A model generated the notes under the pieces. The model ran no database searches. It had not been told where the DNA came from and was given only the letters and a program-made list of their open reading frames with translations. A stretch of 64,000 nt of DNA from Dendrobates tinctorius. Taxonomy: Eukaryota. The DNA lies in assembly GCF_039654945.1 (NCBI RefSeq), contig NW_027362062.1:3100001-3164000 (forward strand). The letters run 5' to 3'. The translations under genes were made by a program, and so were the position numbers. This document shows positions 1 through 4,480 of this stretch, one piece after another (positions within the stretch are counted from its first letter, which is position 1; every line of letters begins with the position of its first letter).

Positions 1-1100
1 AGATTGTACAATCATTTTAACATGTGTTTTCAAAGTAAGTACCCCAGCCTCATCAGGTCGACTACTATTGTATGCAGTCTGAATAGTTGAATCTTGTCAT
101 AAGTCAGCTTTATAGGGAAAGGGAAATAGACCCCCACTAGATTCAGTTCTGTGAACACTCCCTAGAGCCGTTTCTCCAAGTGTCACATCCTCTTCTTTTT
201 CTTCCTAGTAGTTTCTTAGCTTCTTGTCCCAAACCCCACAATGTGGACCCCGGCCTAATTCCAAGTGCATCACTTGCCCATACCATTGCTTTTATATATA
301 AAATAGGATAATGCATGTACACTGCTATAATATTTGTACAGAGATAATTAGCTTTTAGCGAGCATTGAATACTGGAAGATTTCGGTTAGGTAGAATTATG
401 AATGCAGCTCTGGAGAATACTATAAACTCATAATTAGTATCAGATACTGTAAGTGATACAATGTATTTACAAAGAGGCAACTTCGTATGAAGATAAACTC
501 TACAAGTAAAATATTAAGGAAAAATTAGGATACAATTTAAGGATCACCTTAATGGCGTTCTTTAAAGGGGGTGTCTCATGAACACAATCCCTCGCCATAC
601 ACCTTAAGACCGTCTCTGTTGACTGATGAAACAATCCTTTTAATGCCATCTCCTCTGTATCTTTCCAAATACTCCATTTCTGAGGATCCTCTGCTACACG
701 GGAACGTCTTATGTTCTTTCTTCATGAGCACAGGGCTCCTCTGTCTCCCGACTTCCTGCTTGCCAGGAGGCAGTGTACTCCTGATGATTGATGGTTCAGA
801 CCAGTGGCGTTGTCGCTCCGCTGGTCCAACCTGTGCAAACAGAGGAAGCTTTGCCTCTGCAGCATCTGAGGAGCGCAGGGGAACTGAAGTTGGCCAGATC
901 CAGTGATTTACTCAGATTCAGAGCAACACTTACAAGCTCTAAAGCAAAGAGCTTGTAAGTGCTGCACTCTTGGCCACCTCAGTTAGACTGCAGAGATGGT
1001 CGGTAATGAGCAATAAACAATAAATAAATTGCAATTCTTTACCCATTTAGGAAGCAGAAACAACACCTTTAATAGACTCCAGCGACCGCCGCGCACTCAC

Positions 1101-4100
1101 CAGTACTCTTCTCGCTCTCTTATTTCTTCGGTGGTGCTCCATAGACAGGCATTGGAGATTGCATTGTGCACCAGTTCCTGGTGACTGGGGAATGTATAGG
1201 TCGGGTCTTCACATACGTCCACTATCCTCTGCGGTAATCCTTCTATCAGCTTGGACTTTGTCAGCCATAGCGCCTGCTTCACTCCTGACACAGAGAAGGG
1301 AAAGATGTGACTCCGCGAGGGATTAAAAATGCAGCATAAACCAAAAATGAGCAGATGACAGAATGTAGCACTGCCGAAACTCCAGAGATCAGTGTGGAAC
1401 ACCAGCCAAAAAAAAGCTAAATTTCCCTGCAGCGTCTCCACAGGAGGCAGGGATCACTACACACCTCTTACTGAAATCCATGAACATGCCGGGTCCTAGA
1501 GAACAAGACATACTGCAGCCTCTATTACAGATCCACGCCAATGTTACAGGGACATTAAAGAGATTCTGAATACGGGAATTTTTTCCCCTTATGCCCCTTA
1601 AACCCCCACTTATATAGAACAGACCCCCAACATACAGCATGTGATCCACAAAAAGCATGTGACCCCCATTAGCACACCTCATAATAAAATCTCCCTATTC
1701 TACACAGATCCCGGACCAGTCCTCCCCCTTCTACACATCGTTCCCCCACACCTGCGCGGAGCCCGGCCCTCCCTACACCTAACAAGATCCCGGCCCGGCC
1801 CTCCCTACACCTAACAAGATCCCGGCCCGGCCCTCCCTACACCTAACAAGATCCCGGCCCGGCCCTCCCTACACCTAACAAGATCCCGGCCCGGCCCTCC
1901 CTACACCTAACAAGATCCCGGCCCGGCCCTCCCTACACCTAACAAGATCCCGGCCCGGCCCTCCCTACACCTAACAAGATCCCGGCCCGGCCCTCCCTAC
2001 ACCTAACAAGATCCCGGCCCGGCCCTCCCTACACCTAACAAGATCCCGGCCCGGCCCTCCCTACACCTAACAAGATCCCGGCCCGGCCCTCCCTACACCT
2101 AACAAGATTCCGGACCGGCCCTCCCTGTCTTATGAGGAAAGGTTGCAGGATTTGGGAATGTTTAGTTTGCAAAAGAGAAGACAGAGAGGAGACTTAACAG
2201 CGGTCTACAAATATCTCAAGGGCTGTCACATTGCAGAAGGATCATCTTTATTTTCATTTGCACAAGGAAAGACTAGAAGCAATGGGATGAAACTGAATGG
2301 GAGGAGACACAGATTAGATATTAGAAAAAACTTTTTGACAGTTAGAGTGATCAAAGAGTGGAACAGGCTGCCACGAGAAGTGGTGAGTTCTCCTTCAATG
2401 GAAGTCTTCAAACAGAGGCTGGACAGACATCTGTCTGGGATGATTTAGCGAATCCTGCTTTGAGCAGGGGGTTGGACCAGATGGCCCAGGAGGTCCCTTC
2501 CAACTCTACGATTCTACACCTAACAAGATCCCGGCCCTCCCTACACCTAACAAGATCCCGGCCCGGCCCTCCCTACACCTAACAAGATCCCGGATTGGCC
2601 CTCCCTACACCTATCCAGACCCCGGGCCGATCCTCCCTACACCTATCCAGACCCCGGGCCGATCCTCCCTACACGCGCCCAGACCAGTCAATGCGCAGTT
2701 TGACACAAGCCAGACCAGGCAATGACAAACAACCAACTGGCAATTTATTCAGAGTTTCACAAAGTGTCAGCCAGAGGCCTCCCAGCACAGGGACACCGCC
2801 CCCCCCCCCCCCATACCTCCCAGCACAGGGACACCGCCCCCCCCCCCATACCTCCCAGCACAGGGACACCGCCCCCCCCCCCCCCATACCTCCCAGCACA
2901 GGGACACCGCCCCCCCCCCCATACCTCCCAGCACAGGGACACCGCCCCCCCCCCATACCTCCCAGCACAGGGACACCGCCCCCCCCCCCCCCCATACCTC
3001 CCAGCACAGGGACACCGCCCCCCCCCCCCCCATACCTCCCAGCACAGGGACACCGCCCCCCCCCCCATACCTCCCAGCACAGGGACACCGCCCCCCCCCC
3101 CCATACCTCCCAGCACAGGGACACCGCCCCCCCCCCCATACCTCCCAGCACAGGGACACCGCCCCCCCCCCCCCCCCATACCTCCCAGCACAGGGACACC
3201 GCCCCCCCCCCCATACCTCCCAGCACAGGGACACCGCCCCCCCCCCCCCCCCATACCTCCCAGCACAGGGACACCGCCCCCCCCCATACCTCCCAGCACA
3301 GGGACACCGCCCCCCCCCATACCTCCCAGCACAGGGACACCGCCCCCCATACCTCCCAGCACAGGGACACCGCCCCCCATACCTCCCAGCACAGGGACAC
3401 CGCCCCCCATACCTCCCAGCACAGGGACACCGCCCCCCATACACCCAGCACAGGGACACCGCCCCCCATACCACCCAGCACAGGGGCACCGCCCCCCATA
3501 CCTCCCAGCACAGGGACACCGCCCCCCATACCTCCCAGCACAGGGACACCGCCCCCCCCATACCTCCCAGCACAGGGACACCGCCCCCCCCATACCTCCC
3601 AGCACAGGGACACCGCCCCCCCCATACCTCCCAGCACAGGCACACCGCCCCCCCATACCTCCCAGCACAGGGACACCGCCCCCCCCATACCTCCCAGCAC
3701 AGGGACACCGCCCCCCCCATACCTCCCAGCACAGGGACACCGCCCCCCATACCTCCCAGCACAGGGGCACCGCCCCCCATACCTCCCAGCACAGGGGCAC
3801 CGCCCCCCATACCTCCCAGCACTGGGACACCGGCCCTCCATACCTCCCAGCAGCCGGCATTTGGGGTTGAATATATAGGAAGGCTGCTCCTTGTACAGCG
3901 CCATCTGCTGGGCGGGCGGGGAGCGGTAATACTGCGGGTTCCAGTCCCTACGGAACTCTATGTACTTGGGCCGCGCCAGCCAGGGGACGTAGTAACAGCG
4001 GTCCGCGTACGTGATCCGCTCCAGCCCCGGGATCTCCAGCGGCTCCTTCTTCTCCCGGGGACTCTGCTCTCGCTTCCGTCTGGCTCTGACACTCAGGCAT

Positions 4101-4165
4101 CGGAGACCGGTTCTGTGAACGCAGGACACACCGGCGGCGGAGGAGACGAGCATGGAGGCCGCCAT
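1101..4165 (-). CDS. MRPL37: Mitochondrial ribosomal protein L37 (mL37), exons 1-2; downstream exons lie left of the window
   Basis: Exon 1 4165-3844 (MAASMLV...LEIPGLERITYADR..YVPWLARP...YIFNPKCRLLG, donor G|GTATGG). Exon 2 1284-1101 (GVKQALWLTKSKLIEGLP...LWSTTEEI.EREEY, acceptor CAG, donor TG|GTGAGT, 184 nt). Motifs match mL37; head-to-head with CYB5RL as in other vertebrates. Confidence 0.95.
1763..2675. repeat. 32-bp minisatellite (CGGCCCTCCCTACACCTAACAAGATCCCGGCC), split by a CR1 insertion
   Basis: 11 near-perfect copies at 32-bp period (1771...2091), resuming with degenerate copies after 2516. Confidence 0.95.
2127..2515 (+). mobile_element. 5'-truncated CR1 LINE 3' end
   Basis: ORF2 C-terminus (LGMFSLQKRRQRGDL..YKYLKG..RFLTVRV...WNRLPREVV..S...FKQRLD) followed by a CR1-type 3' terminus GTCCCTTCCAACTCTACGATTCT. 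Confidence 0.9.
2778..3850. repeat. Minisatellite of 30 to about 40 bp with a variable poly-C tract, in MRPL37 intron 1
   Basis: About 31 copies of C(n)ATACCTCCCAGCACAGGGACACCG; explains the stop-free ORFs at 2595-4177. Confidence 0.97.
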
Positions 4166-4330
4166 GTTGGCGCGCAAGGGATGATGGGTAGCGAGCGTCA
4201 GCTGAGCGGAGCGGATCTGGAGCTGGAGTCAGTGCGGGAGCCGCAGCCGCACGCTATGTCTGTGTGCACACTGTATGCTGCGTCCATGAACGTGATCTCT
4301 ACCCAGTAGTTCTCGTCTTTGCAATTTTAC
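4166..4330. promoter_or_regulatory. MRPL37/CYB5RL bidirectional CpG-rich promoter with probable non-coding first exon of CYB5RL
   Basis: CpG-rich; YY1-like CCGCCATGTT overlapping the MRPL37 ATG; plus-strand donor TAC|GTGAGT at 4331; the CYB5RL ATG exon starts with an acceptor at 5301. Confidence 0.6.
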
Positions 4331-4375
4331 GTGAGTTTTTTTCACTTTTCTTTCTTTTCCTCTCATATCTTTCAT

Positions 4376-4480
4376 TTAGATTGTGAACCCCATCGGGGAC
4401 AGTGACGATGATGTGTGCAAACTGTAAAGTGCTGCGGAATATGTTAGAGCTATATAAAAATAAAGGTTGTTATTATTACT
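4376..4480 (+). mobile_element. L2 LINE / L2-tailed SINE 3' end
   Basis: TAGATTGTGAACCCCATCGGGGACAG...TGTAAAGTGCTGCGGAATATGTTAGAGCTATATAAAAATAAAG followed by (TTA)n, typical of an L2 3' tail. Confidence 0.7.

Follow-up and report, generated by a model that had tools for sequence, protein, structure and literature searches.

The first intron of MRPL37 in the poison frog Dendrobates tinctorius opens with a minisatellite in which the end of exon 1 and the adjoining 5′ splice site are repeated head to tail, and assembled transcripts join only the first, authentic donor to exon 2. We read the array as a lineage-specific minisatellite of the type known from intron 7 of human F7 (F7 IVS7), in which the first donor is used and the copies are most likely a near-neutral by-product, and we put the probability of this reading at about 0.8. 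All coordinates refer to the window, i.e. the whole 64 kb stretch of DNA that was analysed, which contains no N; a slash marks the cut in splice-site and boundary sequences.

Gene identity and the authentic exon 1/intron 1 junction

By homology, the gene is MRPL37 (mL37) of D. tinctorius, located on the minus strand. A Pfam scan of the exon 1 peptide returned no family, and the identity was settled by matches to solved mL37 chains and to frog orthologues. Each of the two exons was matched to mL37 in its own search. The exon 1 translation (3845-4165) aligns with residues ~27-114 of solved mL37 (E 1e-19) and that of exon 2 (1103-1282) with residues 117-176 (E 2e-15), and the split codon exactly fills the gap between the two matches. 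Joining the 3844 donor to the 1284 acceptor, which the initial annotation had already placed correctly according to both the mL37 match and the contig joint, gives a gapless alignment to solved mL37 and all frog orthologues. The sequence CRLLGG/VKQALWLTK across the exon 1/2 boundary is common to all frog orthologues compared, and the exon 1 translation agrees at 100% identity with the mL37 protein of D. tinctorius, P0023 (name as given by NCBI, where it carries no isoform label). The features of the locus are compiled in Table 1.

Transcript evidence was drawn from Logan contigs on 1000-4400, obtained from X1, X20 and X19 (organism A, three studies) and X11 (organism B). The data thus span four runs, four studies and two species; they are assembled contigs, which drop rare variants, and include no NMD-blocked sample.

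Table 1. Features of MRPL37 exon 1, intron 1 and exon 2, in window coordinates
Feature	Position	Strand	Evidence
MRPL37 exon 2	1101..1284	minus	Acceptor cag/GA at 1285/1284; mL37 match; contigs cover 1101-1283
Intron 1, 2559 nt	1285..3843	minus	Span skipped exactly by contig joint
Whole minisatellite	2779..3852	minus	Tandem Repeats Finder; unit table; 30 core matches against 0 expected
Distal array, units 19-31	2779..3256	minus	Units identical save for G-runs of 10-16; 12 canonical G-quadruplex motifs
Proximal array, units 1-18	3257..3812	minus	G-runs of 6-9; several point variants; both decayed donors
Unit 0 (original intron start)	3813..3843	minus	Unique variants; close to single-copy Ranitomeya/Phyllobates sequence
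Authentic 5′ splice site GAG/GTATGG	3838..3846, cut 3844/3843	minus	Sole joint in four transcript assemblies; gapless mL37 alignment
MRPL37 exon 1, coding part	3844..4165	minus	mL37 match; transcript contigs; ATG 4165-4163; ends in phase 1

On the opposite strand, X19 and X20 contigs on 4145-4332 end at a plus-strand GTGAGT (4331). This stretch looks like the 5′ exon of a divergent CYB5RL-like neighbour, the product of which carries Oxidored-like, FAD_binding_6 and NAD_binding_1 domains in the loci compared here. This putative 5′ exon stands head to head with MRPL37 exon 1, for which contigs extend to 4207 and the ATG is at 4165, and the two overlap by 60 nt or more.

Architecture of the array

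Tandem Repeats Finder describes the array on the minus (gene) strand as one repeat at 2778-3852 with a period of 30-32, 32.3 copies and 93% matches, and a unit-by-unit reading of the minus strand resolves it into 32 head-to-tail units of 29-40 nt each. Every unit closes with the nine bases TGCTGGGAG, which are the last nine of exon 1, and GTATGG with a G-run comes next. On the minus strand, the 14-mer GCTGGGAG/GTATGG is present 30 times, once at the authentic site (exon end 3844) and 29 times as a copy, the first copy having its exon-like end at 3813 and the last at 2817; the copies are identical to the authentic site over 15 nt, from position -9 to +6. Two more units are decayed, reading GGGTG/GT (intron +1 at 3471) and GGGT/GT (intron +1 at 3442). 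A 26-nt unit core has 30 matches in the 64 kb window, all 30 within the array, where shuffles predict 0. The initial annotation had reported about 31 tandem 5′ splice sites, a unit whose last 14 nt equal the real junction and poly-G runs of about 6-16. These statements were borne out by the 30 exact junction copies plus two decayed units, by the identity, in fact over 15 nt, and by the unit table.

The G-run that follows GTAT is two bases long at the authentic site and 6-16 long in the copies, with 6-9 in units 1-18 and 10-16 in units 19-31; the exact lengths of the 10-16 nt runs may carry an error of one or two bases. Apart from the G-runs, units 14-31 do not differ from one another and show a 40/35/40/35 higher-order pattern, and the point variants are found in proximal units. 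The GC content is 0.71-0.76 across the array (0.73-0.76 in its distal part), with a gene-strand GC skew of ~+0.6.

Origin of the array in the Dendrobates lineage

For comparison, we used the loci of Ranitomeya variabilis (L001), Phyllobates terribilis (L002), Anomaloglossus (L004) and R. imitator (L005). The junction is single-copy in R. variabilis, R. imitator and P. terribilis. Anomaloglossus shares the exon end, but its intron start has diverged and shows no repeat. In the alignment of the relatives the array corresponds to a gap of ~1 kb with conserved sequence on both flanks, and the orthologous intron 1 measures 874 nt in R. variabilis, 1157 nt in R. imitator and 1245 nt in P. terribilis, compared to 2559 nt in D. 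tinctorius. Judged from this alignment, the array is a lineage-specific insertion of ~1 kb, which we date to the Dendrobates lineage because it is absent from Ranitomeya and Phyllobates. Since contigs of organism B lie on the distal array, it may, though not securely, be shared within the genus.

The exon end is under protein constraint and conserved in anurans, and the four dendrobatoid relatives are without the repeat; therefore, the exon end came first and the repeat was copied from it. Descent of the exon end from an older intronic repeat was rejected, as CRLLGG/VKQ is present in all anurans and the junction is single-copy in the relatives. The earlier view of the array as an amplified MRPL37 exon-1/intron-1 boundary is upheld, with the boundary fixed by mL37 homology and by spliced contigs.

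In the relatives, the intron start is very like unit 0, and ~22 nt into it lies a 10-mer that agrees with the exon end at 7/10 bases and terminates in the same GAGG. In the scenario we favour, a segment of ~31 nt, comprising the last 9 bases of exon 1 and the intron up to about +22, would have been duplicated in tandem, likely through slippage between the exon end and the similar 10-mer 31 nt downstream in the ancestor. Slippage between two such imperfect repeats would be the simplest origin. Unequal exchange or slippage would then have raised the number of units to 32, with the G-run of the unit growing longer towards the distal end.

Other features of intron 1

Intron 1 also harbours two arrays of a 32-bp G-rich minisatellite on the minus strand, at 1761-2126 (11.4 copies) and 2530-2674 (4.5 copies), which flank an insert at 2127-2516. 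As a related ~35-bp array occupies the matching intron place in R. variabilis (L001 2473-2719) and P. terribilis, the 32-bp minisatellite is older, evolving and apparently split by an insertion. Over the ~390 bp stretch 2126-2516, contig depth sums reach 10^4-10^5 in all four runs, and many loose ends fall at 2516 and ~2126. This stretch is a very high-copy interspersed repeat (transposable element) inside the 32-bp minisatellite.

Just downstream of the junction array, a 25-nt block containing AATAAA (2737-2761, minus) is near-invariant in D. tinctorius, both Ranitomeya species and P. terribilis (L001 ~2420-2446, L002 and L005), where its flanks are diverged or deleted; Anomaloglossus is without the block. 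By its conservation, it could be an intronic element, possibly a promoter-proximal poly(A) signal. A comparison of 2762-2778 with L001 2362-2420 indicates that D. tinctorius lacks ~45-50 nt that are found in Ranitomeya/Phyllobates between GCCTCTGTCTGAC and the AATAAA block. From the alignment, the missing segment is a deletion adjoining the array expansion.

Assembled transcripts use the first donor

In each of the four runs, one long contig (1264-2213 nt) jumps from 3844 to 1284 with GT..AG ends, which identifies the runs as RNA and the authentic donor as the one in use. Exon 1 is covered over 3843-4207 with 0 differences in the organism A contigs, and organism B is ~96% identical in exon 1. 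The contigs of the four runs contain no other joint involving the array. Unit 0 is particularly informative in this respect, because any mRNA from a downstream donor must contain it. Depth arithmetic leaves unit 0 without a contig in all four runs: the depth of the bin 3736-3849 equals the depth of the main contig multiplied by 7/114 in every run (1.6, 3.28, 1.8 and 20), so that the main contig fully accounts for the bin and nothing else is present on unit 0. At the resolution of assembled contigs, splicing uses only the first donor in mature mRNA.

The array itself is touched in X11 (organism B) by low-depth contigs on its distal part (2938-3279), which may represent pre-mRNA, with extended exons as a formal alternative; the three organism A runs have no contigs on the array. 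At the protein level, two protein word searches yielded no predicted protein with the exon 1 end plus array-encoded residues, which is a weak negative, and none of the 20 protein search matches is an mL37 longer than normal.

Frame, strength and G context of the copied donors

The first copied donors are located at +31, +61, +91 and +121, all in frame +1, followed by +153, which is in frame and would add 51 aa. These offsets agree exactly with those initially annotated as frameshifting and in frame, respectively. Of the 29 copied donors, nine keep the frame, eight displace it by +1 and twelve by +2 (20/29 out of frame); the frames assigned to the distal donors could be wrong, because G-run lengths are uncertain in a HiFi assembly. 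If an out-of-frame donor were used, translation would terminate in exon 2, at its codon 2 or codon 25, and such frame-shifted products are classic NMD substrates by an established rule. As initially noted, the MRPL37 frame remains open through the array (ORF 2669-4177). The observation is correct but uninformative, because all three gene-strand frames are open through the array and the unit cannot spell a stop. Coding potential of the stop-free array was rejected on these grounds, the openness of all three frames being a matter of composition.

All 30 donors share one 9-mer, GAG/GTATGG, which agrees with the MAG/GTRAGT consensus at 6/9 positions. Since the nine scored positions are identical, the 30 sites would score alike on any 9-mer donor model, including MaxEntScan, and the choice among them must rest on position or wider context. 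With regard to context, the authentic donor has the poorest G environment (GG-A-GGG), whereas the G-run of the copies starts at +5. Intronic G-runs 3′ of 5′ splice sites are hnRNP H/F splicing enhancers that favour the upstream donor, and the runs at +5 of each copied donor resemble them in sequence. By this rule, the copied donors should be at least as good as the authentic one; yet the authentic donor wins. Position, not G-run strength, therefore seems decisive.

Canonical G-quadruplex motifs were defined as four G3+ tracts with loops of 1-7 and counted as sequence motifs; of the 23 on the gene strand of the window, 12 belong to the array. These 12 are confined to distal units with G-runs of at least 11, each with a pseudo-donor in its first loop, and neither the authentic donor nor any of the 17 proximal pseudo-donors has a canonical motif. 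G-quadruplex masking was rejected as the cause of the silence of the copies, because these 17 pseudo-donors lie outside canonical motifs. An MFE fold of the 1.2 kb repeat that included G4 terms revealed no pattern that marks out the authentic site, and it is given no weight here.

The array belongs to a known class of junction minisatellites

Minisatellites whose first monomer spans an exon-intron boundary form a known class, with examples in human F7, IFI6/6-16, CBS, LMNB2 and PDGF (PMC1557585). In F7 IVS7 (37 bp, 5-9 units) the first donor alone is used; mutagenesis revealed that the most upstream functional donor among identical consecutive donors is chosen, and that identical, even strengthened, pseudo-sites stay silent while the upstream site is intact (PMC1557585). 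For the other genes, the same paper describes the first donor and the two nearest of 25 pseudo-sites as used in IFI6/6-16, and the first donor and two pseudo-sites in CBS IVS13 (15-20 repeats), while the authentic donor alone is used in LMNB2 (100 bp, 10-15 units) and in PDGF intron 4 (81 bp, 16-18 units) (PMC1557585).

The frog array is a junction minisatellite of the F7 IVS7 type, a described class that the initial annotation had not recognised. It consists of head-to-tail units within the ~10-100 bp range of this class, its first monomer spans a genuine boundary, and in assembled contigs no donor but the most upstream one appears in mature mRNA, where the class allows for the next one or two. 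As in F7 intron 7, an authentic donor is followed by identical pseudo-donors, and the mRNA shows the most upstream one alone. The two arrays differ in that the one in F7 follows an internal exon and consists of 5-9 units of 37 bp with 4 exon bases copied, whereas the frog array follows a first exon and consists of 32 units of ~30-40 bp, with 9 exon bases copied and a run of G6-16 behind each donor. Furthermore, the F7 pseudo-sites are functional by mutagenesis, while the frog pseudo-donors are known from sequence alone. With IFI6 intron 2 the frog array shares a similar number of reiterated donors behind the authentic one; in IFI6 the two nearest pseudo-sites are constitutively used, whereas no copy is seen in use in the frog contigs.

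The repeat unit of CBS intron 13 is 31 bp long, about the same size as in the frog, and the arrays of CBS, LMNB2 and PDGF likewise span the junction. The authentic donor alone is used in LMNB2, PDGF and, in contigs, the frog, whereas CBS uses two pseudo-sites. The CBS, LMNB2 and PDGF arrays are length-polymorphic; the frog array is known from one assembly.

Interpretation and alternative roles of the array

In our interpretation, the first, cap-proximal donor is the one used for essentially all detectable mRNA. By analogy with F7, its success would follow from a position rule, by which the most upstream of identical consecutive donors is chosen, and, as this is a first exon, cap-proximal, co-transcriptional first-come recognition would push the same way. 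If a copy were occasionally used, the product would be out of frame for 20/29 donors, run into the exon 2 stop and probably be removed by NMD. We infer that near-neutrality is the most likely state of the array, which would represent a tolerated by-product of unstable repeats in a GC-rich intron close to the promoter and not a regulatory device. As a counterpoint to neutrality, G-skewed DNA with a predicted tendency to form G-quadruplexes, no more than ~400 nt from the transcription start, could affect transcription.

The initial annotation had proposed that the competing donors act as a dial between productive, NMD-targeted and extended transcripts, or as a U1 decoy, and had named junctions from the array to 1284 as the check. 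Run on assembled contigs, this check finds only the 3844 donor, with rare NMD-cleared isoforms beyond the reach of such contigs. As the contigs contain a single junction, unit 0 is uncovered and no array-encoded protein was found, neither proposal is supported. A dial in which a measurable share of transcripts uses pseudo-donors, and array length or G-run slippage sets MRPL37 output, is in our view unlikely. It could draw on the 15 nt (-9 to +6) that the 29 copies share with the authentic site, hence on their identical 9-mer donor score, and on the consequences of their use, namely an exon 2 stop for the 20 out-of-frame donors and an in-frame insertion for the other nine. The two pseudo-sites nearest the authentic donor are used at some level in IFI6 and CBS (PMC1557585), and low-level use of the +31 or +61 donor is therefore plausible here by analogy. 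On the other hand, the canonical junction stands alone in four transcript assemblies from two species, F7 pseudo-sites remain unused beside an intact upstream site even when identical or strengthened (PMC1557585), and at least 51 residues of Gly/Cys/Trp-rich repeat would be unlikely to be tolerated in a mitoribosomal protein.

A role of the unspliced RNA or of the DNA appears more improbable still. Here, the array would be a landing pad for U1 snRNP or hnRNP H/F, or an R-loop/G-quadruplex element. We see little chance that a landing pad reinforces the first donor or suppresses premature polyadenylation, and no better prospects for an R-loop/G-quadruplex element that would modulate the MRPL37/CYB5RL bidirectional promoter. 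The density of 30 U1-complementary sites and 31 G-runs of at least 6 within 1.07 kb, beginning ~360 nt from the mapped 5′ end, is consistent with such roles, as are the high GC content and skew, the 12 G-quadruplex motifs and the AATAAA hexamer, which lies 30 nt past the array in a dendrobatid-conserved block. However, Ranitomeya, Phyllobates and Anomaloglossus do without the array while expressing the same conserved gene, so that MRPL37 function does not depend on it, and the free variation in G-run length together with the two decayed units is what would be expected without constraint.

The published D. tinctorius assembly was built from PacBio HiFi reads with hifiasm (PMC11152451), and the locus of the D. 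tinctorius mL37 protein (L003, GCA_039654945.1, JAYMGB010000394.1) equals the window base for base. That the array, or its size and G-run lengths, stems from mis-assembled HiFi reads is very improbable: homopolymer length is the main residual HiFi error, the G-runs reach 16, and the three organism A runs, which have no contig on the array, provide no independent same-species confirmation, but the 1.07 kb array is far below the HiFi read length (at least 10 kb), the ordered variants and the higher-order pattern of its units are typical of real arrays, X11 contigs from a related species sit on it, and the collapse of repeats of this kind is to be expected when short reads are assembled at k=31.

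Implications

On present evidence, the array has no demonstrated effect on MRPL37. We give little credence to the more far-reaching idea that the poison-frog genome is unusually prone to minisatellite seeding exactly at 5′ splice sites, with low-level use of the copies and NMD at MRPL37. If this were true, G-rich donor junctions might serve as cores for minisatellites or as hot spots of recombination, and MRPL37 array length would be a heritable modifier of mitoribosomal protein output.

Independently of such effects, the frog array adds a non-mammalian first-exon case with 29 pseudo-sites to the few natural experiments on the choice among identical donors. Its copies reside in a richer G-run context and yet are unseen in mRNA, which agrees with a position rule ("oriented scanning" or first-come) and not with context strength. 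The array could also serve comparative work on the birth of minisatellites.
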